Positions 21,980 through 57,540 of a DNA stretch of 64,000 nt are shown one piece after another; position 1 is the first letter of the stretch, and each line of letters opens with the position of its first letter. The DNA comes from Phallusia mammillata (taxonomy: Eukaryota). The notes below the pieces were generated by a model. That model had not been told where the DNA came from. It saw nothing but the letters and a program-made list of their open reading frames with translations, and made no database searches. The translations under genes were made by a program, and so were the position numbers. The DNA lies in assembly GCA_965637545.1 (NCBI GenBank), contig OZ281496.1, positions 25,358,001 through 25,422,000 on the forward strand, read 5' to 3'.

Positions 21980-24900
21980 TCAGGGGTCGCAGTTCACCAC
22001 GTAGAGTCCTGTCTTTTTCTTGTTGCGATGAATACGAACGGCGATGAAAACCACGAAGACTATTAAGATGATTGCAGCGGCCACCACTACTCCAATCAAC
22101 AGGTTTCTGCGAGAAAATACACATGGTAAGCAATTTGAAACTTATTGTAAGTGGAGTATCATCACTAACAAAACCCGCTGATGCTTTAATTGAAAATTTT
22201 GTTATACTTAAGAAAGAAAATTAGAAAATATTGAATCCACATAAGCACCACAACTTTATTTGCAACTTTAAATTTTTTAGTAATGTTACCCCCAACAACA
22301 GCCAAATGCATTTTGTTAACCCCTTTTCTTAATCGAAAACTACTAACTATGACATCACAAAAGGATAACTTGAAAAAGATAATGTTAATACCCCCTGAAA
22401 AAAAAACAAGGTTCCCCCTCTAAGGGTAATTACCCACAAGCTAAGAACAACTGCTCCCTTTACAAAATTAGCATTTTTACTTGGTGACTATTTGGCATAT
22501 TGAGGAGGTTTCGCTGTAAATTTGCGAGATGATTGATTCGAAAATCTATTTAGATGACGCTGGTCGCTAAATGTCAGATAGGTCATTTTCTGTGTAATGT
22601 CGAAAAATACGCCAATGACATGGTAACTGATGCGTACATTTCGTGACGAACATCACTTTTGTACGTAATCATGCCTTAAGTAAATTGCAGTTTTTTTACA
22701 TCTTGCAACCTTACGATCAACTTGCTAATGTTCGAAACGTTACTTTCATTTCGCTCGAGTCATGGTAGGCATTTAATGAAATATCTTTTGACCTTCGCAT
22801 TCTGTTTCACGTTCCTTAACGTATAAGGCATGTTGGATTGAAATAGCTCTGTTTTGAAATTGGTAGGCCATTACAACTTCGTTTGAAATTTGCTGAAAAA
22901 TTGTCATGGCCGTTACTTAATTACACCGTTGTCAAGTGCTGATTTAGTCTTTCATATCGGCCGAACGGTATTCCAATTATGTAAGCGCTTGTTCTTGGAC
23001 ATGAAGTGGGTATTCGGAATTAAGAGTGTTTTGCTCGTGGCGAAATAACGTAACCACGTCTCGTGGGATTTTTTGTTCCACTTGATCAAAGTACTTCGTG
23101 GTCCGTGGGTTGACGTGCGATGAAAGTAACAGGTGTTTGTTTACAACTTTCCGTTTGGCACGTGAGTTCAAAACGGCTGGTGCTTTTCTCATCACTAGGC
23201 ATTAACACAGAGGTTTTAAGAGGTTCTCAAACTCAAAATTGTGTGTTGTTTACGCCTTGAAATTTTACCCCCCTTCCGGTTGCTTTAAAACGACAATGCT
23301 GAAATGATTTGCTTTTATATATTTATGGATAAAATTTTGACCCCAGGTTGAGAACTACACTATAACATTCATCTTACATATTCATTTTTCAGGGTTGGTT
23401 TACTAACGTAAATGATTTACCAAAAACCAAAGCCTTCTGTAAACGTTTTGTTGAAATTGGTACTTGTCTATACTCAGTTAAAATCAGAACCATTTTTAAC
23501 ATTTCCTAAGAAGTTAATATGATTTGAACTTTCATAATGACTTACTGTGGTATTGCTTCATTAACAACTCCATCTATATTTGTTGTTTTTTCATTAGCTG
23601 TCGTTGAAGAAGGTACAAGAAACTCATTGGTTGGCTTTTTCGAATTAACCAACACAATTCCAGTCCGTTTTGTAGTAATCTTTTCAGGTATAGTGGAAGT
23701 TTCCTGTACAGCTGTCTGATCTTCTCCAGTATATGTTGTGTTTTCCACGAATACGGTGCTTCCTACCTCATCTGTAACAATACCTTGTGAAGTGGTTAAG
23801 ACTTGATTCGTTCCTACCACAGCTGGTGGGGTTGCAACATCTTTGTCCCCAGTGGGAGGCGTTGTATTTATAACAGTTAATGCTGTTGTATCTTGTATAA
23901 CATTGACTGCTGTTGGATCGACACTTGGAGTGGTTGCTGTAATATCCAATGCTTGCGTTGTTTCCCAGCCTGTAGTCGCTTCAGTGCTGTTTTCAGGTCT
24001 TCTTTCGGCTGTGGTATATGGCTCAAAGGGGGTCGTTGTTTCGGGTTCAGGCGTTGTTTCTTCTTCAGTAGTAGTTGGAGCGGTTGTAATGATTGGTTCT
24101 GGCCTTGTGGTTGGACAAACCGAGTCGTCGTTGGTACAAAACGGAGTTTCCGCGTGAATACAGCAATACGGTGCACTGGCAAAACAGTATGTTGCCCCGC
24201 ATTCTGCTTTAAAAACGCAACTTCGCGGGCTCACTGTGCAGTATGGATCTGGCCCCAAACGACAGCAATGGCTCTTCACTGCTGAGCATTCTTGGTCGCC
24301 GCACAGATCTGAATCTGAAGCTTGCGTTGTGGATAAGTCAATGGATGTTGTAACGGCAGATGTGGAGGAAATTTGCTCAATGAACGTGGTGTCTGAATTA
24401 GGCGGAGGAGAGCTTTTAGCGCATATATCCTCGTTCAATGTGCAGAAGGAATCAATGCTTTGGCGACAACAGTAAGGCAGATCAGCTAAGCAGTAATTTA
24501 TGCCGCACTGTGTTCTCGCGACACAGGTTTGGCTGCTAACCGTGCAGTACTTGTCACCATTGATCTCACAACAGAAAGGAGTGACCACATTACACGAGGT
24601 AGTGCCACACTCAAAACTTGACACACACTCGCTACTGTCAGCTGCACAGTAGAAAGCCAGTCCTGTTTTACAGCAGTGAGGGTTACTAGCTGGGCAGCGT
24701 CCACCTCCGCAAGACGTCTCTTGGCATGTTTCTCGATTTGCTGTACAGAAGGCTGAGGTTCCTCTTCCACAGCAATACGGTTCCCGTTCAGTACATGACC
24801 CACTGCCACAAATGGTGGCCACACAGTTACGACCGGCTTTTGTACAGTAGGCAAACTTGCCTGATCCGCAACAGTAAGGCTTGCTAACCGAACAAACGTA

Positions 24901-26312
24901 TATTCCGCACAGACTGCGTGCTACGCAATTCCTTGAGCTTACTGTACAGTATGGACTGGTTCCTTTCATGCAGCAGTAGGGTTTCACAAAAGAGCATGTT
25001 TTCAGTCCACATTGAAGCCCTGATTGAAAATCGTATGTTGGTTAGAGATGTACGAAATATTAAAGGTACATATCCAATTGTTATGGCATTGGTGTAAACG
25101 CTAGTTTTAAATGCTGTTAGTTTTTAAATTATGATGAAAATGAATCCGGATAAGAGCTATTGGCAATGTTTCCGTTTATCATTCGTATAACTGTCAAGGA
25201 ATAAAATTCCAGTAATGTGGTTTGAGGTAATACACTAAGGGGCTTTATGAATTCGGGTAGAAGAAACTAAATTTACATTTTGCCTGGTGAGGAAGTTTTT
25301 AATAATAAAGTGGGTTTCTATTATGTTACAACGAAATGTATGTTTCTCGTTAAAGCGCAATTTAAAGAAATAACTCGCGTACAATTTTTCAATCGTTCAG
25401 TTACAAGTAATACAAGTCGTTTAAACCTCAATGTTTCTGTCACCTTGTCCCTAAAGTTCTCTAAATCTTTTCTGACAGAAAATGCAATATGTGGTGTTCA
25501 ACCGATTATTGGCTGAAATGGTGACTGACAGGCTGTTGTGGCATGTGAATATCAAAAGCCTTTTTTAACATGGCGTTGTGATTTGTAGAATGAGATTTCA
25601 AGCTGTAATATTAGGCCATAGTTGACACGGGTTTTCCGTCAATTTCAGTATGTTGCCAAGTTGCGAAATATGATCTTAGTAGAAAATGCCTTGTGGTCAT
25701 GTTAACTCGTGATTTGGCATTACACTAGTGGTACGTGCCATATTTGCGACATTGATTGACTTCATTGGCTTAGTTTGAAGGCTGTGGTATTTTGTTTACG
25801 CGACTGTACCAGATTACACAGTCAAATCGCGGACCAATCCTGTATTCAAGGTTTAAAACAACATTAAAGTCACCTTCATATGCATACCGGTGTAAATGTG
25901 GTGAGGCTGGGCAAATATTTATTTTTAGGCTTTTATTACGACACTGTTTTATTGCAAGGCTACGTCACGCGCATATACCTTTAAAAACTGTTACAAAATT
26001 GGGACTATAACACTAGCAATACAATACTTCTTAATAGGGTTTGGGAAATATCTTGCCTCTGTACATAGCTATAATTATAAACAAACAATGTTATAAAGTT
26101 ATCAGAAGTAAAATATTCAATATTTTTTTAGTAGTTTAACGCTTTTTTAACTGTTAACTTCTTGAAAATCTGTGCAACGAAAATTTAGTCAAATGAGGTT
26201 TGTTATTGCTCATTTCATCTGCAACTATTTTACAAAAAAATCACTCACCTTGTGCATTAACCAGCAGAATTAGATTGAAAACAAACAATAAAACGTAGAC
26301 TGGTCGCTCCAT
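21980..26312 (-). CDS. Type I membrane protein (~554 aa): signal peptide, 8 six-cysteine repeats, Thr/Pro/Glu-rich mucin-like stalk, TM helix, short cytoplasmic tail
   Basis: Exons 26249-26312 (MERPVYVLLFVFNLILLVNAQ, GTGAGT donor, phase 1), 23546-25019 (Cys repeats + stalk, GTAAGT donor, phase 2) and 21980-22106 (NLLIGVVVAAAIILIVFVVFIAV-RIHRNKKKTGLYVVNCDP*). Frame closes exactly (1665 nt). Confidence 0.88.
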
Positions 26313-29300
26313 GATTTGTCAATGCCCTCAGACGGATTTTTGACAATTACTAATTAATAACTGCAATTAAACACTCCTACTTTAATTTTCTATTAGAGCT
26401 TACGGGTTGTCTGTTTCCTGCGAAGCAAAACCCTGTTTAAGCACTAGTTAAGAGTCGTCCGAGACAAAGTCACAACTTTGGCCACAAAAGTGACCATCCC
26501 GTATTGGGAATAACCCAGATCAAATTTCGTTGTGGTGATTTTCTCTAAAATCTCGCACAGGCCAAAGAGAGCTATAATCCGATAAAAAATTCGTAATCCG
26601 TCATCGCGGAATTTGGTTGTTTTCAATGTCCAGCGCATTTAATTAGCTTCTGACCTGCTGGACTCGCGTGCTTATGGTAATCGTACAACAGGTTTACCCA
26701 CAATATGATTTTCGCCTCAACTCCCGTGTAAATAGTTTATGTTTGACAGAATGATTTTCATTGATAGCAGTCACGATTAATGACTTCAGCTCCTTAAATA
26801 TGTAATAATTGGGAACTCACGATCATTCGCTGTACTGCCTTCGGCTTTAAAGTTCGGTGTCAGGATTGTCCTTGCGTCAGAGTACTGAAATACACCTTAA
26901 ATTTACAGGCTCATGAAAGCCATAACTCAGCAATTATAAAATTCCCTTGATATTTTTCTTGTCGTTCACCGAAAATTTGCTTGTTTTTTACAATGTTTGT
27001 GGCTGCGTTTGAAAGTTGTTACAATGCCACAAAGAGTTATATGCTATAGAATTGGTGCCTGAATTACATTACAACACAAAACATTCCTAATTGCAGCCTG
27101 AAAAGAGCGTTACGTAACTCTAATTCTAATCTTTTCTATGAATCTTAAATTGGTCCCTGTAATTTTATCCTTTGAAACACCAATTTTGTGTTTCTTATCT
27201 AAAAATACCACATTTTCTTGATGCAACGAAACAACACATGATTTGCCTACCTGTAAAGTGGCCATTAGTTTATAATCGTGTGGCCCACTTTATTAAATAT
27301 ACTTCATGCATTTATGTTGTGTACATTCACTCCTTTATTCAGACCCCTCAATCTTTGTTACAAACATTTACTACTTTACAAATTGTAGCCTAGATTCGCA
27401 TTTGTTCATACAACAAAAACGTCACATGCCTTTGTCATGCTACAGAACAGATAACATTGATGGTCGTGCGGGCCGCTTTATATAACCTATCCTTAGCATT
27501 TATCTTATATGTGATGTCTTCTCTATTTAAATACATAACTAAGACTTTCTGTGGAAAAGCACAATTGTTCTGCAGTGTAAAGCAGCCTTTAGCCGACATA
27601 GCCCCTGAATTCAAATGTTTAACTGCGAAATGACCCTCAATGCAAATGTGTTACCCCCTGTTGTTTATAAGTAGTCGTACCAAGAATAAACGTGATCCAG
27701 CGAACACTGGGCCCCTCGCCATATACTGCAATGCACAACCAATCGCCCTCTACATTCAATTAAATGCCATTCCTTGCGTGGTATATTCCCCACGACTGAT
27801 AACATACGTGGTACATTTGCCGTATCTCACTGTACTTTATTTAAATACCATTCCGGGTATGGTATATTGTTTACGTCTTGCAGCATATCCCGTCGTGATC
27901 GCACCTGTGAAAGCATTTCAGGTGTTTGCCTTAGCCAAATGCCCTGTTATTTTGCGTGTACCGCTATATCATCACATTTTGTGCATATTGGCTTTTATAG
28001 GATCCTGTAAACACGTCTTTGATATACACTGACCTTAATATAACTTCACCTGAATGCACCGACTGTAAAAATGTGCCGCAGAAATTTATGAAGCTACCAA
28101 CTGAAACTTGATACCGCCTAAATATCAGCATGTTGACGGATGCGTTGATTAGGTTCTGCAATGCGAGCAACTTATCTTAATGTAACGAACTTTTATTATT
28201 GTGCCATATCAATCACTATAACCCGCCATTTACATACCGTACATTGTTAACAGTATTTTTGTTTAATGCCAAAGCGTACTATCAGCGCAGTGGTAAAAAT
28301 AGCATATATTTTTTTCAAAACCGTTTTTTTGTGTATTTTTATCACTATGTACTATCAATTACACTTTTCGCATTTTTACGTACGAAGCTCAACAAGTTAT
28401 TCAAGCCATTTGTAATACTTTTACATGATTGCAACAATTTCAATCCTAAACCCTTTTAATCACCACTAGATAACAACTCTGCATGATGTTACCTATGGCG
28501 TCTGCCAATATCTGCCCATAACTTACGCAGGAATCTAAGCCGATGCCCAGAGCATAGTTCCGCCCACTTATTAATCTCCTATCATCTGACTGTAATTGCA
28601 ATCACGCTGCTCGATGGCCCTGGAATCATTAAACTGTTCTGGTCGGGTCAGGCGTTGATGACGTCCGCTATGGCCTGGCTGCAAGCGTTTTTTATACCGG
28701 ATAAAGGAAAACGTTTTTATATCGTATTCGTCCAGTTTGTGGAAAAGATTTTTATGTAAGATTTCCTACGGCAAGGTAGCATTTAGTGCTTGATCCTAAA
28801 ATGTTTAATTTCCTTTGCGATTTTTGGATAATTTACGTTTACATACCTCGCGAATTTTTTGCAAAAATTGCACGACAAATGTATAGTAATCAATAAAACC
28901 CTGGTTTGAATGCAAATTGCAAACGAGATCGTATGCGAACAATCCTATATCTTAAGACGGTCTGATTGCCTCAAACTGAAATCAGGGTTTTACCCTAGGC
29001 ATATAGGACACACTTAAGAAAGATTAATAAAATGCGTATTTTGCACAATATGTTTCTTCTGCATATGCATTTAAATGTTATGACTCAACTCACGTTGTTA
29101 CGCGGACACATAAACGCTTTCCAAATCACCACAACTGCTTTTGCGGTAAACCAGCGAACTCCAAACAAGCTATCGTAGCATTTTTTCATGCCCGTTATTG
29201 TCCCGTGGATATTTTTCTGTACCTCGGCTCCCACACGCAGAACGAGACATGACAATTACCACTCGGCCTCGTAGATTGCCACTGTTAACTGCGATTTACG

Positions 29301-29775
29301 TAGAATCTGCTTTAATTGAGCCGCGTTACTTGACCGTGTATCGTTTCTCGCCTTCGCATTTCAATTGCCTGCCAAAAGCCTACAGTAACTGCATTCAAGT
29401 ATTGTTGATTTTACTTAAGGCTTACAACTTTTGATGACGCCATCCACTTACATCAAGCCTTCAAGTTAATGGTGCAAAAATTCTTTGCAATCCAAGCTAC
29501 TTCTAATTCTTAACTATTTTGGGTTATTGCTAAATGTTTATTCCTGGTTAGTGATACTGAACCTTAACCGATTCTCCGAAGTCCAACGCTATTCTGTAAC
29601 ACAGCAGTGGTTTCCACTTTTGTTTACCCATTACCCACGCAGTTCCATAAAATCCCATTGCCTTTAATGGGTTGACATATAAATCGCATTTGTTTCCATA
29701 TAAGTTAACTTTGTTTCAAAAGTTTCAAATGAACGTACGCTACAAGTTGTGAATCACTGCTCTGACCCTTTACAT

Positions 29776-30078
29776 CAGGGGTGGGCAACCTGCGGCCCTT
29801 CATTAAAGGTTGTGCGGCCCGCAGAGATGCTTGGATTTCAAAAGTACTGATGGTAAACGAGTCCTATTATTACATATTTTGAGCTGATTAATGCGCCTGA
29901 TGCTAGTTTTCTGCGATCTGGCAAAATGTGGCTAGAATCAAATACGAATTATACTTGTAGTTAAGCACATTTGGTAAGAAACAAGGCAAAATCACTTTGT
30001 GTTATGCACATGTGCGGCCCGCGATCCAATTTTGACATTTATAATTGGCCCTACAGTAACAAAGGTTGCCCACCCCTG
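29776..30078. mobile_element. Non-autonomous hAT element (MITE)
   Basis: TIRs CAGGGGTGGGCAACCT / AGGTTGCCCACCCCTG; perfect TSD CTTTACAT; subterminal GCGGCCC motifs. Confidence 0.93.
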
Positions 30079-30737
30079 CTTTACATCAATACGAGCACTT
30101 TAACTTTGCCCAGATTATGCTTTGCTATATGGTAAGGTAACAATGATATCAAACTGCTCTCCAACATATGCTTGCTTTAACACCAGATTGTCTTGCCTTA
30201 AAGTGATTTTTTTCGTCTATGTCTAACACTGGCCATCGAACCATTGCGTGCCAAGCTATATATGGCGTTGGTTATCACGTGATAAGAAAATGAGGCATTT
30301 AGTTGAATGCTGGTTAAGTTATTCTCTACTAACTCAAACATATTTGCATTGACCATGTTGTTGTTACGCTATTGCTCATCATGTAGGTTCTACAGTTGCC
30401 CATGATGGTGTTATGACATAATCGTGACTTTACTAATATCACGCCTTGCAGAAAGTCTGTGATCTTTTCATCTATGTGAATGGTTTTGATAGTTAGTCTC
30501 CGTGCAGTGATATGGAAACGTAGGTTGCAGTACACAGAAATAAAACTTAGCGCTAATTTTAGACGAATATCATTGGAAATGTGTAATTTTGTCGCACGAG
30601 GTGCAAAAGCCACGTCTGCTCTGCTTTTTTCAGCATTTAGCAATGCTATGTACACTGTACAAAACACCTGATGTGGCATGTACAAATTGATGAAAAAACA
30701 CAAAAAATACAACACTGAGTCATTGTCCAATCGCCTT

Positions 30738-33700
30738 TTACTGCAAGAAGTTTGCACCAGAGCCTGCTCCGCTGCTCGCTCTTGTGGTCGTGCCTTCAGG
30801 TCCGTTTTTATCGATGGTTGCCGCTGAACCAATAATAGCAACTACCGTGGTTGCTGTAGGAATAGTTTCTTCTTGTTCACGAGGTCTTACAGTCGCTGCG
30901 CACTTCCGTTCATCGTCAACGCACATTGCGTATTTTCCTGTTCCACAGCACTGTGGTCTCCCCGCGTAGCAATATCCCAAGCCACAGCGTTGCTTGTACA
31001 CACAAGAACGTGGACCAACTGAACAGTACGGTTCTCCACCTTTTCGACAACAATGAGGCTTTGTTCGGCTGCAAGTCTCCGAACCACAAGATAGATTCGG
31101 ACATTGACTCTGCTTCGCCACGCAAAAAGCCAAGCCGCGGTAGCTACAGCAGTAAGGTCTCAGCAAAGAACAGAATCGGCTTCCGCATACATTCGCTCGA
31201 CGCGAGAGGCAACTGCGCACGCTTACTGCGCAGTAGGGTTGATTGGTTTGTGTGCAGCACACTGGCCGTATTGCTGAGCAGGTTATTTGACCACACGGAG
31301 CGACTTCTGCAAATGAAATAAGATTGTAAAGCTACATTAATTCCACTTTTCTGACACACTTATGGATCTGATTGGATTAATGAATCGTACACGTGTTGTC
31401 ACTTTTTGTCCTTTTCGATGTTGTCAGTTTTTGACCGATCATCATTAAGGCAACTATTTCTGCGACTTCTAATCATTATTACTAGAGAACGTATCTGAAC
31501 TCGAAACTTTATGCCCCACTTTACATTCCCAAAGTATTTGCTTTACAAAGCTATGTCTAATGTACCAAGTCATCTAACTTTCTTGATATATAACGCTTAC
31601 CGGGATCCCGCCGTACAGTGCTGATCCTCACAGTCGGTCTGCTCGGTGGCGCTCTCTTACGGACATTACAGGTGAACTCGCTTCGCGTGCAGTGTGCGCC
31701 ACCTACCGGACAGCAGTACGGCCTCAAGCTGTCGCAATATCTCGTCCCACAAATTTCCCTGCCAACGCACGTGCGCGAACTGAACGTGCAATAGTCGTTG
31801 TTTCCGCGGGAACAACAGAACGGCTTTACCACATTGCATCGCTCTGCGCCGCATGTGTTTTTAGGTTTGCAGAACTCTTTACTTTGTGTGCAGTAGGCGG
31901 CTCCTTCTGTACCGCAGCAATAGGGATTGGAAGATGGGCATCTGACACGACTGCACAGCGTACGGGTTACGCAACTTCTCGGGCTTACGACACAGAAGGA
32001 TCGCGCTTTCGTTTTACAGCAGTAACGCTTGATGCCACGGCACTGCTGACGACCGCATCTTGTATCTAAACAAACACAAAATACAATGTAACGCCACGTT
32101 ACAAAGGGTTAACACGTCAATGGCTGCATTGCAATGGGGTCATGAGATAAATACATTGTATGCATGCAAAGGAATGTAGGTTACTGCAAGATCTTGTCAA
32201 ACGGTGATTGCGATGCGACGTACAGCATCGCAACAGGGACATTGCGTAAACAAAAATAAACAAGACTTTGCAATCTTTCGGCCATTTGTACTACAGCTTA
32301 GAATTGTTTGTCGTATTGAACCGTTTATAAAACCGTTGGTATTTTTCTGAAGTGATGGAGTTTTCATAACAAACTTAGTCTCAAACTTGTCCACCGTTTT
32401 TTTAGTTGTTTAGTTGTAACTTGTTTGTCACGGTTGCAAAAACTGATTTGGTGATTTAAACTTGTTTTCGTCGATATGTACCCGTTATTGGGCATGTAAC
32501 GTGTTGGTAGCTTTTCTCCTTCGTTTTTGTTTTGAACGACTGTTTTCCTTTTTAGTTTAATCCGTAAACTGTGCCGGGGTAAAACTTTTTTTTTCGGCTT
32601 TAGGTGTGCTATTGGTGGATATTTCCATTATTTAACTTTAAATAAAGCGTTTCGGAAATTTACGACGTTTGATGGAACGGGTGGAGTTAGTAAAGTAAAG
32701 TAATAGTTAAATGCCTACAATGAGATTTTGGATGCTTGAATCAAATCACAGTCACCGTCTGGAAATCGCAATGTTTTGTTGAATGTAAATGATTTGTATC
32801 TTATATTTCGTGTAATACGGTCGATATGTTTGTTGGGTGAGCGTTATAGGTTGATGCCAAACTGACTTTCTACATACTTTATCCGAACAAACGAACATTA
32901 TATACAACAAGCTTCCCTATACCTACACCCTTCATGTCTTGCACCTAACGATGTTCGTTATATGCAGAAGATCTTAATCTTTTCCGAGATGTTTGCTATG
33001 ATAACCTACAGAACAGCAACGCCGTAAGCAACCTAACCCTGCAACCAGTGTTATTTCAAGTTGTTGTTACCAAGTAATTGACCTTTAAGCTAGGGAAGTT
33101 TGGTTTTATAACTTGTGGTATTTCAAGATCACAACCCATTTGGTTTTGGTTTTATAACTTTTGGTTTTGATTTTATAACTTGTGGTATTTCAAGATCACA
33201 ACCCATTTGGTTTTGGTTTTATAACTTTTGGTTTTGATTTTATAACTTGTGGTATTTCAAGATCACAACCCATTTGGTTTTGGTTTTATAACTTTTGGTT
33301 TTGATTTTATAACTTGTGGTATTTCAAGATCACAACCCATTTGGTTTTGGTTTTATAACTTTTGGTTTTGATTTTATAACTTGTGGTATTTCAAGATCAC
33401 AACCCATTTGGTTTTGGTTTTATAACTTTTGGTTTTGATTTTATAACTTGTGGTATTTCAAGATCACAACCCATTTGGTTTTGGTTTTATAACTTTTGGT
33501 TTTGATTTTATAACTTGTGGTATTTCAAGATCACAACCCATTTGGTTTTGGTTTTATAACTTTTGGTTTTGGTTTTATAACTTGTGGTATTTCATGATCA
33601 CAACCCATTTTGTTATGATTTTTTAACGACCGCATTTTCTCAGCCGAGTAGGGTTAATTCTAACACAACGTCCAACTTTGCCTTTAGATGCATTTTTGTT

Positions 33701-36103
33701 CTTTTTTAACTTTTTAGGTATATAGTTTTTATAACACGTTTCGTCGAAATTGTTTTCATTTTCTTCCAAAATTTTTGGACATATATTTGCCGCCTTAACC
33801 CCCAAAAATGTTGTTCGTTATCGCAACCAGGCTCTTGGAATGTTTCTCTTTTAAACGCATTTTGATCTTATAACCAAGTAGGGAAATCTTTAGGGCGAAG
33901 TTTTGATTGTTTTGTGACATTTTACTAAAAGTTTTAATCCTTAGCAAGTAAAACACTTCATACCAAAAAATAAAGTTTTTTAAAATACGTTTTACCCTTT
34001 GTGTGGCATAGTGCAAAATTTTCCATTTTTTGGAAAATACCTTGGCTTTTATCACTGTCTTGAAAACCCGATTCAAGGAAAACTATGATTATCCCAAAAG
34101 CACAACAAACAGCTTAGCATTTTTTCAACGTCGAACAATACACTTCATGAGCAATACTCAGGATGAACGAGCGTTGAATAAGCGATTTGCAGCCCACAAA
34201 CATGTTGAAATATTACACAGAACCGTGTGCTTCAGTTAAAGTACACTGCCTGGGGTGGTTAGATATCTTTTTGCTTATTTGTGATAGCTGCGCGATAGCA
34301 GGGAATCTCCTGCGTGCATTGGAATCGCTTTTTCGTCATTGTTAAGGCTTAAGCCACCTTTAGTGTAAATGAAACCACAGTTGCAAGGTCAGCATTCGTT
34401 TTACTGTTAACGTGACACCAGTTTTGTCGTGTTATCGTGGTCGATGTGCCTGTTGTAGCGAACCTGTACGCAATCCGATACTGCATCAACAAATATCATG
34501 AGAACTTTGACCCCAGCTAAGCGATTACGACCAAATTCCGATTGTCTGTGGTTCTCAAACTGTTTTTTTTAAGTTTTACGCCACAGAATGTATCTCCTAT
34601 GTTCTGTTTTATCCCTAGTGCTTCCATATCATAAGTTAAATCGAACATAGACTATAAAATAAACACCATTGCAAGCAATACATTTTTTTGGTGAAACCAT
34701 GTTTTGAAGTTGCAGTCCACGACAAAATTGATTTACCGGCCTTTATTTGAATCACAGATCCCGGTTAATTAATTTAGCGTTTTGTTTTTTATTTTGGTAA
34801 CATTTTGTTTCCACACAGTTTATCTATGCAATATTTTTTATAAAGTTGTTTGTGCAACGGTAACAATAGCACCCTTAGGACGGGAAACAAAAATCTTACT
34901 TCAATCTATTTGCCTAGATGACTAAGGTGGCCCTTTTAGGTGTGTTGCTTGATTCACTATACAATTACCGTTTCCTTAAGGCCTAGGGCAAACTTGCATC
35001 CGGTAATCTTATTTACTTGCATTTGCTACCCAAGGGTTAAGGCCTATCTGTTTGTGCATCAAAGGTGTTTGACGTTTTAGCGTGAAACGTCGATTTTACA
35101 GTTTTCAGACAAACATCGTATGTGTGACGTGTTTTCGCGGCCTGCTGGTTTGTTGTTCATGACGTCACGTTTTAAAGATTGTTTATCGAGTCGACAAGGG
35201 TCGAACTTTGTCTTAAATTGTCACCCAAATGTCAATGTGAGGCAAGAGGTTCAATGGTGTTTTTGTCGAAATTTGTCATTGAGAAACGGTGGATTATAAC
35301 AAATATAAGATTATTTCAAATTTTGACACCAAAACAGTATATCTCTGGTGAAAAATAAATATGATTTTGTAGAACCAAATTTTCATTTAATATTGTTTTG
35401 CTGTGAATAACCATTGGGACAATATATTTTTTTGTAATTTAAATTTGATTCTTATTTTTGATGCTGTTGCGTGTAAAAGTTTCTTGTTTTTTTAACGTCA
35501 GCGTATAAAACATTTAGTTTTTTCATATTATGGCCTCGCAAAAAGAAATAACTGGTATCCTCCGTCAAGGATATAAATTATATCCTTTTATATCATATAA
35601 TGTTCCTTTATATTACAAAACACTGTTAAAATATGTTAATTCGCCAATTTACATTTCAGCGTGCAGCATGATGATTGTGGTTTGTGTAAAGTTGTTTTTG
35701 CTAGGTGTGTTATCCACATAATGTTTGTGGTTGCAAGAAATCGCATTATAATGACACATCATTATTAAACTACATATTTCCCTTCAACGTTGTTTATCGT
35801 AGAAAATTCCCCAATTTAAATTTTCTGTAATTTGAAACCAACTTGGTAACTAGATACCGTTTGTCGGCAAAACCAATTTCAATTGTCAGTTTTAACATTT
35901 TGCCTTTTATATGACCCCAGCATCGTGCAAGGAAAATCGTGCCTATAAGGCTAACGAATATGGGACCTATATGACCGAATGGTTGCGTCGTATTGCTTTC
36001 CCATAACATGGCTTTATGTAAAATGACAGTTTGTTTATGTGAGTCACTTACTTGCAAATGTCACTGCCACCACTGCGAAGATGATCGCTAAAGACCGCAG
36101 CAT
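30738..36103 (-). CDS. Secreted Arg/Lys-rich protein (~361 aa) with 8 six-cysteine repeats; paralogue of the 21980-26312 gene
   Basis: Exons 36052-36103 (MLRSLAIIFAVVAVTFA, GTAAGT donor, phase 1), 31601-32065 (4 repeats + basic linker, GTAAGC donor, phase 1) and 30738-31306 (4 repeats + short Thr/Ala/Gly tail, ending NFLQ*). Frame closes exactly (1086 nt). No TM segment seen. Confidence 0.85.
33100..33611. repeat. Minisatellite, 67-bp unit, about 7.6 near-identical copies, in intron 1 of the secreted Cys-repeat gene
   Basis: ACTTGTGGTATTTCAAGATCACAACCCATTTGGTTTTGGTTTTATAACTTTTGGTTTTGATTTTATA recurs at 33111, 33178, 33245, 33312, 33379, 33446, 33513 and 33580. Confidence 0.97.
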
Positions 36104-53900: not shown

Positions 53901-56900
53901 ATGCAATATGCAATCCCACAGATAGGCACGCGATTTCACGCATTAACAAAGAGTCTTTAATGCTCACACCATAGCATGCATATTTGACACCATAAGTCAA
54001 CTAATAGATAAACTTCATTCACGCTATTTTGGGTTTAACGTTTGCTTAAATGTTTGTAACCTGTGCAAACAAAGGTAACGTAAAGTGTGTAAATGACAAG
54101 GAAGTTCCTGTAGTATTCAGGTGATTAAGAAGCGATTAACTTTTACGAGCGTTTGTAGACCTGTTGCAAACGAGATTGTTATTTCGCTTGTTTTGACGCG
54201 TTGTCCCAAAATTGTACTTTTTAGGCGTATTTTTGTTAACATGACTAGCGAAAAATAATGAGATATCGTGAATTTTTAGGTAATGCCCAAGAGTACATAA
54301 GTTCTTCCGGGGTTCGAGCCCCTGGCGCCGTCGAACGCTCAAAGCGTCGGCAACTAGGGGGCAAATGCTACTGGGGCAGAGTAAGCAGTCTGTTGACAGC
54401 TGACGTGAGTTGGTTACGGTCTGTACCGATTTTTACTGACCCGTGTTACGGAGCAATTTGGGCATGTTTCTCAGTCACGGCACTTCAACCGCAATTAGGC
54501 CGCAAGAAACGGGAAAGGCCTGTATTTCGCTAGTGCTACTAGTTCTCTTGAGGCTCCATGCATATGAAACAACATTACATACGAATAGCCACCCACGTTG
54601 TGTGTAAGTTACCGTATTCGAGCACTTTGGGCAACACATAGGTTTGCAGAGAGTTTTTCTCAAACAACCTCGCCCAGTTTTAAGTCAATCCTAATTATTG
54701 AAAAAGCGGTGTGGCCTATCTTGAACTTGAGGTTGGGCTTTGGAAAACATAGTTTAAATAGCTCCTTTTCCCACAATTTGATTCATCGAATGCCATGTCC
54801 CAGATGCGTTTACCAGAACTAGGGTGTTTTCCTAACCTTGCCACCTTAAACCAGACATCCCTGTTCCGTTTTCTACAAATTGATGACCACATCAAGTGGT
54901 TGTAGTTTTTATCCACCAAGTAACGAGCTTAAAATATACAGTCTTCGCTTCAAAGCGGCTGTTTTCATGGCGATATTAGCTCTACAATATGTGTTTATCG
55001 CATTGGCATATTTAAACAGACGCGAGTAAGTTAACAACCCTGTGGTGCGAAATTAAAGGCGGATCAATAGCTTGTTTGGTAACCTTCACGAAATTAAATT
55101 TAATCTTCACCTATGCATGAGCACATACACGTAAGAAACGAAGCAAATTAGGCTTGAAATTTTCTATTATAAAGTCTTTGTTTTGGGAAACGTGCATGAT
55201 AAGTTAGAGTGTTAGACGCTTCAATGCGCCCTAAATTGTATCAACAGGAGTTTCATGAGTCAGCTACGCAGGTTTCGGGCCGTTCCGCTAAAATTGCGTA
55301 ACATTGAATTTGACATTAAAATCGAATGAGAAATGTTCAATTTTAATACATTTTCTCGCATATTGATATTTACACTGTCTACCACTTCATTTTGTCGCAT
55401 GCTAAAGCGCAACACAGACTCGATATACAGTTCTACACCAAGCAACCTGGACGCTATTTGTAGTTTGGAACTATACTACAAATAGTCGTTTTCCTGATAC
55501 TAGTAAATTCAGTCTGGCGCCTTGTTAAATGCCAAAGGTCAGACGCCTGGCAGAGATATGGGGTTGTAAACAGGAAAATGCGTTAATAATTCACGTTTTG
55601 GGGTCGTTGAGTATTGGCTTGCGTTGACTGCTTATAAATTAAGCGGCCAATTTAGCTACATGGTTACCGTCTCGATTTTGCATTGACATTCAGCCACTAA
55701 AGGAATAGGCCGGCGAGAATTACGGTTGAATAAACAGAGTCAACTGTCGAGATCAAAGACCTTGGTGTGGTTTAATGATTTTTCCTAAACGATCTCTTTA
55801 TGGGCCAACTTAAATTTTTGTTAACATTGAGTGGATCGTTAGGGTGTAGTTCAAAGCAAGTGTGGCTTTATTCTGACTAAGAAATGTAAATACGGGTACA
55901 ACTTGTACTTTTGGATTTTCCGCATTTGTTTTTCATTCTGCGAATATGAATATTCACTACAAAATTGCAACCCGCCATCAGCAAAACACCTCTGTTTTCT
56001 ACACTGCCCCCCTGACATTTTGAGCTAGCCACAACATGTGCGTAATGCCTAACGCGTGACATGAATACTATGATTGGTGAAGCTAAAACCCACGCAAAGT
56101 CTTTACCATCGAACACATCTGGTCCTGCTTTCCATTACAGACAATTTGCAAAACAAAATGACCTCGTCGAAATCAAATCCATTCACAACACAACACACAC
56201 AGAAACACATGCAACACGGTAACATATTCTTCCTTGTAAAGGTTTGCGGTTTTATAATTTAACCCAGATTTTACGATTTGAATAAAACCAACATTTTGAA
56301 ATTCAATATATTCTGGGCGACCAGATAGAAACTTTTTTGGATGACAAAACTCATTTCTGGTGTAGTTTGGATATTCGTATAAATTGCAAAAAATCTCTTA
56401 AGTGTATAATAAGTTTGTCGTAGAGTTGTTTATTGAGCTGTTTCTTACAAAGCAATTTCTTTATGAATCCAATAAAGATAGAACGATTTTTTTATGTTTA
56501 GAACGTTCCAATCCTATTTTAAAAAGTTTCGCTTCTATTAAGGTTACAATACTGAATCCAACTTTTATAAAAAAATTCAAAAATTCAAAATGGCAAATGT
56601 GAATACCAGTGCATTGCGACTGTTCCAAACGGCATTCCAAAGGCACACGACAAAACAAACTCGAAAAAAACTTACTTTCTGTTGTTGGCAAAGGCGAGGA
56701 GGTTGTCGTTGCGTTGGTGATAGTGACGCACGGATGGGTATCAGTGAACTTGGAGCAGTTGAGCATCTCTGGCCATTCAAAGGAGAAATCGCTCATGATT
56801 TGCCTACAAGCCGACTGTACGCTAAGACATAGCGAACGGCAGGGAGGTATTGGACCTCCGCTCAGACAAACCGGCGAAAACAGAGAACATAGAAAGATTT

Positions 56901-57195
56901 TGGTATGCGGATGACATCGGGTTGCAAGCAAGGGCACAAAGCTTACAGACTGGCGATGCGCCTCGTCCAACGATTCGTGGCTAAAAAAGTTAGGCAGCAT
57001 CATTTCCCTGTAGCCGACGTCTCGACATAATTTCATGTTTGCTGGAATTGGTACGCAATGTGACGGCTGCCGCACATACTGTCCTATTGCTGTTGCAAAT
57101 GTCCGATGGCCAGATTGTATAATGGCGAGCGTTAAAATCAGTCCGCTTACTAGCACGCCAGCTTTGTGGGCGGTCCACGAGGTTTCGGGCGTCAT
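44971..57195 (-). CDS. sFRP1/5: Secreted frizzled-related protein, sFRP1/5 type (~323 aa)
   Basis: Exons 56676-57195 (signal peptide + 10-Cys Frizzled CRD: CVPIPANMKLC..GY..M.LPN...CHPHTKIFLCSLFSPVC...PCRSLC...WPEMLNC), 51575-51646 (GICAPC...DNFCASEF) and 44971-45350 (netrin/NTR domain: CDC...FLVMGRKV...HKWDKKNK...C). Both introns are phase 1, giving the same 3-exon layout as vertebrate SFRP1/2/5. HKWDKKNK matches SFRP1/5 rather than SFRP2. Confidence 0.92.
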
Positions 57196-57540
57196 TTTTC
57201 CGCCGAAAGCTCTCCAAAGCGTCAATGTCCTCCCGTAAGGCTAATCTTCGTCTCAATCGACGGATTGTAAAAAAAATTAAATCAACTCCTCTGTGGGCAA
57301 AAAACAAGTCGTTTAGCATGTACACAAACTATTCCAAATATGGAAAACTCTGTCACCATGAACTCAACATGGCGATTTCTCAAGCTCATGAGCTATGGGC
57401 TCGCTTTTGTATATTCTGTCTTTTTTCTTTTGCCGCGCAAATTTAGCACCTGAGGCCTGTTTTTCCCCAACGCTGCATACCTAAAAGCCGCCGTCTGCGA
57501 CGATGGTTAACTACACTTACCGTGAGTCCGAGTACGAGTC

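Follow-up and report, generated by a model that had tools for sequence, protein, structure and literature searches.

A tandem pair of genes built from an unassigned six-cysteine module in Phallusia mammillata, one probably encoding a membrane-anchored mucin-like protein and the other a secreted paralogue

Stalked type I receptors such as the LDL receptor and thrombomodulin have an O-glycosylated stalk on which arrays of binding modules are projected. Here we describe a 64,000 nucleotide stretch of the Phallusia mammillata genome (the window; assembly GCA_965637545.1, contig OZ281496.1, positions 25,358,001 to 25,422,000, without runs of N), in which two neighboring genes on the minus strand, called gene A and gene B below, each encode eight copies of a module of about 33 residues with six cysteines. 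Gene A is like those receptors in its predicted signal peptide, tandem six-cysteine modules, stalk, single membrane helix and short tail. It is unlike them in that their LDL-A or EGF modules (approximately 35-40 residues) are not matched by the module found here, and neither NPxY nor any other known signal was found in the gene A tail. The Shisa/STMC6 proteins (Shisa_N, PF13908; CYYR1, PF10873) are likewise single-pass proteins with a small six-cysteine extracellular domain containing a CC pair, but they have one membrane-adjacent domain and a long, proline-rich PPxY tail (PMC6125347) and no mucin stalk, against eight repeats on a stalk of approximately 190 residues and an 18 residue tail without PPxY in gene A. 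The N-terminal two-hairpin half of granulin shares a disulfide-pinned stack of beta-hairpins with a strand of the P-x-aromatic-CC type, and progranulin is also a secreted tandem array, but granulin has 12 cysteines and four CC pairs where the module has six cysteines and one CC. Inhibitor cystine knots and conotoxins of framework VI/VII have the order C-C-CC-C-C and a similar size (the likeness is one of order), but the Cys4-Cys5 loop, which is usually shorter than 7 residues in knottins, has 7 residues in the module. We give a probability of about 0.62 to the reading that genes A and B are tandem duplicates within a small family of cell-surface glycoproteins, gene A encoding a membrane-displayed array of modules and gene B a soluble array without stalk or membrane exon.

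A six-frame motif scan of the window produced 16 stop-free matches to C..C..CC..C..C, all on the minus strand, with eight at 24115-25011 (gene A), eight at 30900-32057 (gene B) and none elsewhere in the window. This agrees with an earlier note on this DNA, which had counted eight copies in each of two same-strand genes and whose outermost coordinates (the gene A stop TGA at 21982-21980 and the gene B ATG at 36103-36101) were exact. The spacing of the module is C-x4-C-x6-CC-x7-C-x6-C. When the 16 repeats were aligned, the six cysteines were invariant, a glycine followed the first cysteine in at least 90% of the rows and a proline preceded the CC pair in at least 70%, with an aromatic residue usual between this proline and the CC pair and another usual before the fifth cysteine. 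All 96 repeat cysteines are intact across the two genes, and the order C-C-CC-C-C held in 54 of 54 aligned repeats. Two repeat types, one of which has a conserved V-S-x-R-x-C-V stretch, alternate along both proteins. A profile made from the 54 repeats and run against all six frames of the 240-Mb genome recovered just these 16 repeats (E values from 1.5e-12 to 3.8e-6); no 17th copy was found in this genome, the next match having an E value of 0.066. The module repeats are real, far beyond chance, and confined to one locus in the genome.

The frame of gene A, joined over three exons, is open over 554 residues:

26249..26312, minus strand: gene A exon 1, coding part; start codon and signal peptide, 21 codons plus 1 base, ending in the phase-1 donor AAG/GTGAGT
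23546..25019, minus strand: gene A exon 2; eight six-cysteine repeats followed by the mucin-like stalk, ending in the phase-2 donor CA/GTAAGT
21980..22106, minus strand: gene A exon 3; membrane helix, basic stop-transfer stretch, tail and stop TGA, beginning at the acceptor ctcgcag/A

The ATG of exon 1 is the only one upstream of exon 2 that is accompanied by both a hydrophobic stretch and a donor. Repeats 6 and 7 are separated by a 39 residue linker rich in serine and threonine, and the last repeat is followed by the mucin-like stalk (about 23546-24114), which is rich in T, S, P and E, with S, T and P making up 39% of its residues. The SEA domain that adjoins the membrane in membrane-tethered mucins of the MUC1/3/12/13/17 type had no Pfam match in the exon products. 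The acceptor of exon 3 has phase 2, the phase of the exon 2 donor, and hydrophobicity predicts a 22 residue transmembrane helix at approximately 22037-22102, followed by the cytoplasmic tail with the motif KKK-x-G-L-YVVN (KKKTGLYVVN). Gene A thus probably encodes a membrane-anchored, mucin-like surface protein. The earlier claim that it is membrane-tethered is upheld at the level of sequence, which offers a signal peptide, a stalk of mucin type and a transmembrane exon in compatible phase.

Gene B has the same number of exons arranged differently, and its joined frame is open over 361 residues:

36052..36103, minus strand: gene B exon 1; start codon and 17 residue signal peptide, ending in the phase-1 donor CAA/GTAAGT
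31601..32065, minus strand: gene B exon 2; repeats B1-B4 and most of a 26 residue basic linker
30738..31306, minus strand: gene B exon 3; repeats B5-B8, a 54 residue tail without hydrophobic anchor, and stop TAA at 30740-30738

The basic linker ties repeat B4 to B5 across the intron, and the stop codon lies within a donor-like sequence, CA/GTAAAA. A search for a transmembrane-like exon between 26400 and 30740 found none, and neither hydropathy nor tblastn or blastn revealed a vestigial membrane exon downstream of gene B.

These models were compared with sequencing runs of the same species, four of which were aligned to positions 26200-32199. The sequence words of gene A exon 2 were 94-95% present in runs X1 to X4 (approximately 30 Mb of contigs each) and were absent from seven other runs. 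Run X7 covers 26200-32199 evenly, as DNA would, while X1 and X3 cover exons only and are RNA-like. Two RNA-like contigs (X1 rec1 and X3 rec9) cover 26248-26416, and since their overhang at 26248 is exactly the start of exon 2, the junction between exons 1 and 2 of gene A is confirmed; they also place a 5' untranslated region (UTR) of approximately 100 nt that extends at least to 26416. For gene B, a contig of 1317 nt (X3 rec15) runs from 32065 to 31601 and then joins 31306, defining a minus strand intron at 31600-31307 with GT..AG ends and thereby settling the choice between two candidate donors. The same contig continues unspliced from 31306 to 30533, through the stop codon, which gives a 3' UTR of at least 200 nt reaching at least to 30533. 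Because this RNA-like contig reads through the stop without splicing, gene B encodes a soluble, secreted protein, as the earlier note had supposed. Upstream of exon 2 the contig has 78 nt, a size that fits the 52 nt of coding sequence in exon 1 plus 26 nt of UTR; the joint between exons 1 and 2 of gene B is a predicted one. Among the junctions that the earlier note had proposed to check by RNA, exon 1-2 of gene A and exon 2-3 of gene B are thus supported by contigs, while exon 1-2 of gene B is supported by the size of an overhang and exon 2-3 of gene A has no read coverage. A reading of the locus as a single gene, with gene B spliced onto gene A, was rejected, as the gene B contig has a 3' UTR of more than 200 nt and the gene A contig its own 5' UTR and signal exon. 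Genes A and B are separate transcription units.

In order to find relatives, the 16-repeat profile was used in an exhaustive HMMER search of 1.84 billion protein cluster representatives, which produced seven true relatives (E values from 1.8e-41 to 2e-5). An eighth candidate, P0008, was rejected as a low-complexity false match with no cysteine pattern. P0001 to P0006 come from metagenome-type assemblies, and P0007 (CAK8671513.1/A0ABP0EVS2) is an uncharacterised protein of the ascidian Clavelina lepadiformis; no function has been described for any of the seven. The joined coding sequences were compared with the seven by local pairwise blastp, identity between relatives being 23-42%. The seven carry between 2 and 9 modules, compared with 8 in gene A, followed by a long stretch rich in serine and threonine. 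The annotated P0007 protein itself includes a membrane helix and a short tail. Exons encoding a membrane helix plus tail were found downstream of P0002, P0003, P0005 and P0006, and none was found for P0001 (P0004 was left out of this search). An exon for the signal peptide, and a phase-2 donor within which a stop is embedded, also occur among the relatives, which, where checked, share the same three-exon plan, the phase-2 donor lying ahead of the membrane exon. The tail encoded downstream of P0003, KKKGVYVVN, closely resembles that of gene A, and this likeness in a distant relative, together with the matching splice phase, gives the predicted membrane exon of gene A good comparative support. 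P0004 to P0007 have an extra, shorter module, C-x4-C-x6-CC-x7-C-x4-C, after the mucin-like stretch and before the membrane exon, which gene A lacks. At two of the relatives' loci it was placed as follows:

L010, 11609-11689: extra membrane-proximal module
L011, 11390-11470: extra membrane-proximal module

The tandem module with a glycine after the first cysteine is common to genes A and B, and the stalk with a separate last exon for a membrane helix and short basic tail is found in the relatives and, by sequence, in gene A, but not in gene B; no relative lacking a membrane exon, like gene B, was seen among the seven. Word-index searches of proteins were blank both for the repeat region of gene A and for the full-length family alignment, but such an index needs shared 5-mers and the result is uninformative; an ESM Atlas feature search gave no usable match. 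The family appears to be lineage-restricted, its only named member outside P. mammillata being ascidian, which is in line with the lineage-specific system put forward in the earlier note.

The two genes are paralogues. Repeats A3-A6 match B1-B4 collinearly with 41% identity, A7-A8 correspond to B7-B8, the reciprocal best repeats are A4/B2, A5/B3 and A7/B7, and each gene has one additional pair of repeats, A1-A2 in gene A and B5-B6 in gene B. The earlier note had paired membrane-form repeats 4-6 with secreted-form repeats 2-4 and repeats 7-8 with 7-8, and these correspondences hold; its further description of a reshuffled repeat order does not, the arrangement being rather a collinear core with one extra pair in each gene. 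A second tandem pair, P0003 followed by P0002, lies on the same strand of one metagenome contig, approximately 13 kb apart (L006 10001-13427 and L009 10001-12532), with six repeats in each gene arranged as two, a linker and four. At three other relative loci (three of five genomes) there is one gene only within 10 kb on either side. Since both P0003 and P0002 have their own downstream membrane exon, the division into a membrane and a secreted form in P. mammillata would be a local derivative rather than a conserved receptor and decoy design. Left unspliced, a phase-2 GTRA donor reads as a stop, so that loss of the last exon directly yields a clean soluble product, and it is likely that gene B arose in this way, by loss of the membrane exon with the old splice donor becoming the stop. 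An additional intron was acquired by gene B within the linker that joins its repeats 4 and 5.

Taken as members of one family, genes A and B would share an ancestral plan of three exons, encoding a signal peptide, then a module array with a Ser/Thr-rich stalk that is probably O-glycosylated, and then a membrane helix with a short basic tail. The module, about 33 residues long, is predicted to consist of a short turn and two small beta-hairpins held by disulfides. Gene A would retain this plan and hold up its eight modules well above the cell membrane. In gene B, stalk and membrane exon would both have been lost, with the former phase-2 donor now serving as the stop, and the product would be a soluble protein of eight modules. 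From the likeness to other stalked receptors made of six-cysteine modules, extracellular binding is the most likely role of the modules; the soluble paralogue may then bring this activity to the extracellular fluid or matrix, where it would act as a competitor, a bridge or a component of a coat. Several points weigh against this account. The junction between gene A exon 2 and the membrane exon has no read coverage, and a 2123 nt contig of X1 is compatible with either a spliced or an intron-retaining gene A transcript. That the runs are RNA is only a guess, supported by their exon-only coverage when set against the continuous coverage of X7. The relatives are thinly sampled, and a restriction to tunicates rests on one named species and on none having been found elsewhere.

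The protein sequences were analyzed for similarity to known domains exon by exon or repeat by repeat, joined gene models having been used only for reading frames, variants and local blastp. Neither the exon products nor the relatives nor the repeat pairs had a Pfam match, and no PDB sequence was matched. AlphaFold2 gave confident models for one repeat (54-repeat alignment; pLDDT 86) and for two repeats (22 repeat pairs; pLDDT 92.4, pTM 0.67), in which each repeat has a pair of short beta-hairpins together with a short helical turn. The comparison of these models with knottin, hevein and granulin folds that the earlier note had proposed gave no convincing match. With the one-repeat model, the best Foldseek hit in the PDB had an E value of only 7, and an exhaustive VIA-align search reached a best Z of 2.2, its best rows being a three-finger toxin, the mouse Shisa3 N-domain, alphaD-conotoxin (the only row of conotoxin type, Z 2.1) and zebrafish granulin AaE (33 residues aligned at a marginal Z of 2.1). 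With the two-repeat model, no PDB representative, granulin included, reached a Z of 2 or more and Foldseek returned nothing; nor was there a Pfam Granulin match. The module is, as the earlier note had held, unassigned: it represents a new domain family of narrow distribution, set in an architecture that is familiar. It is possible, though not likely, that the module has a novel disulfide-rich fold which, judging from the named relatives, is confined to tunicates, and that the pair is a surface receptor plus a soluble competitor whose tunicate-specific ligand might be a polysaccharide of the tunic, a microbe or the surface of a partner cell; to read the pair as a receptor plus decoy is, however, pure inference.

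It is somewhat more doubtful that the module is a very divergent Shisa/STMC6 cysteine-rich domain (as in Shisa, WBP1/VOPP1 and CYYR1) that was uniquely multiplied into an array. This group did recur in the searches. A Shisa_N cluster was the top row of an ESM Atlas shape search (TM 0.55 over 31 residues, rmsd 1.8), the mouse Shisa3 N-domain (5m0w) appeared in both PDB searches (rank 3 in Foldseek; rank 2 in VIA-align, Z 2.2), and of seven sub-threshold Pfam member matches on the 22 repeat pairs, four were to CYYR1 (two), Shisa_N and Opy2 (E values 1.2-5.7); these proteins and gene A are, moreover, single-pass membrane proteins alike. All of these signals are nevertheless at the level of chance (E 1.2-8.9, Z 2.2). 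The Shisa_N match has an E value of 1.8 in one of 22 repeat pairs and the CYYR1 match 1.2 in two of 22, the shape scores are no better than those of unrelated rows, and the two-repeat model, as noted, has no PDB match. The difference in architecture described above also argues against it, and as Shisa_N was undetected across this genome, no comparison within the genome could be made. The resemblance is a recurring but statistically empty hint, and we regard it as a lead, not a placement.

We consider it unlikely that the modules are hevein-like or CBM-like carbohydrate binders, recognizing tunic cellulose, chitin or microbial glycans, with the pair forming a surface and a humoral lectin. Tandem small domains typically give lectins their multivalency, the proteins are extracellular, and aromatic residues are conserved before the CC pair and before the fifth cysteine. 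These aromatics, however, lie beside cysteines on the strands of the hairpins, where their role may be a structural one. Neither Chitin_bind_1, the profile of the 8-cysteine hevein motif, nor any CBM family in Pfam was matched at E values up to 10 by the exon products or the 22 repeat pairs, which speaks against kinship with hevein and CBM18, whose core topology the earlier note had likened to that of the module; no hevein chain appeared among the Foldseek and VIA-align rows for the one- and two-repeat models, although this is weak evidence for so small a domain.

A role in self/non-self recognition or in recognition between gametes, like that of the polymorphic ascidian vitelline-coat proteins with EGF repeats, seems less probable still for the pair. 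In keeping with such a role, the family is lineage-restricted and fast-diverging, the number of repeats differs between species, and expression is seen in some runs and absent in others. Recognition loci, however, normally show an excess of amino acid polymorphism, and all 10 coding differences between the assembly and the gene B RNA contigs were synonymous (10 of 10), indicating that gene B is under purifying selection; with all 96 repeat cysteines retained as well, the same is concluded for both genes. In this small sample, which is weak evidence, gene B shows no amino acid hypervariability of the kind expected of a recognition locus, and the single genes in three of five genomes also count against this role. 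Least probable of all is that these are multi-headed protease inhibitors, which usually are arrays of small disulfide-rich domains, or precursors of knotted antimicrobial or toxin-like peptides of approximately 3.5 kDa, because, for all that the C-C-CC-C-C framework is common to many knotted peptides and weak fold rows to conotoxin and three-finger toxins were obtained, the repeats are not separated by regular dibasic cleavage sites, a mucin stalk with a membrane anchor is not a precursor architecture, and the known cysteine-rich peptides and proteins of ascidians are patterned otherwise. Among the latter, rusticalin (Cx6Cx6-7Cx8Cx7CC; PMC6339383) and the St-CRP/turgencin peptides (CC-C-C-CC for St-CRP; PMC13208793) were rejected as counterparts, since their cysteine patterns differ from that of the module.

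Two repetitive sequences lie within or between the genes:

33099..33627: 67-bp tandem repeat, 7.9 copies with 98% identity, within gene B intron 1
29770..30083: interspersed 312-bp repeat, between genes A and B and part of neither

The 312-bp repeat had a depth of more than 100,000 in the DNA run against a baseline of approximately 80, and at least 1415 candidate copies were counted in the genome, those that were scored being 92-96% identical. It is abundant in RNA-like contigs too, no tRNA-like part was found within it, and the element appears to be young and non-autonomous. In the 64-kb window, nothing was found by an Rfam scan. Elsewhere in the window, an open frame on the minus strand at 56461-57225 encodes a Frizzled-type cysteine-rich domain (Pfam Fz, E value 8.4e-28) and probably belongs, as an exon, to a Frizzled gene or to one for a secreted Frizzled-related protein. 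Approximately 3 Mb from the window, an exon at C3:28480812-28481030 matches glycoside hydrolase family 6 (GH6), scoring over the Pfam cut-off when counted with its in-frame neighbors, and is consistent with a tunicate-type cellulose synthase/GH6 gene; to our knowledge, tunicates are the only animals with GH6-type genes.

The wider importance of the pair hinges on the ligand and on the tissue in which the genes are expressed. The module itself stands as a clean candidate for a domain family not yet described, and its disulfide scaffold, possibly a new one, invites structural study; the two genes illustrate a route by which a membrane protein may give rise to a soluble paralogue, through loss of the last exon and the reading of a phase-2 splice donor as a stop.

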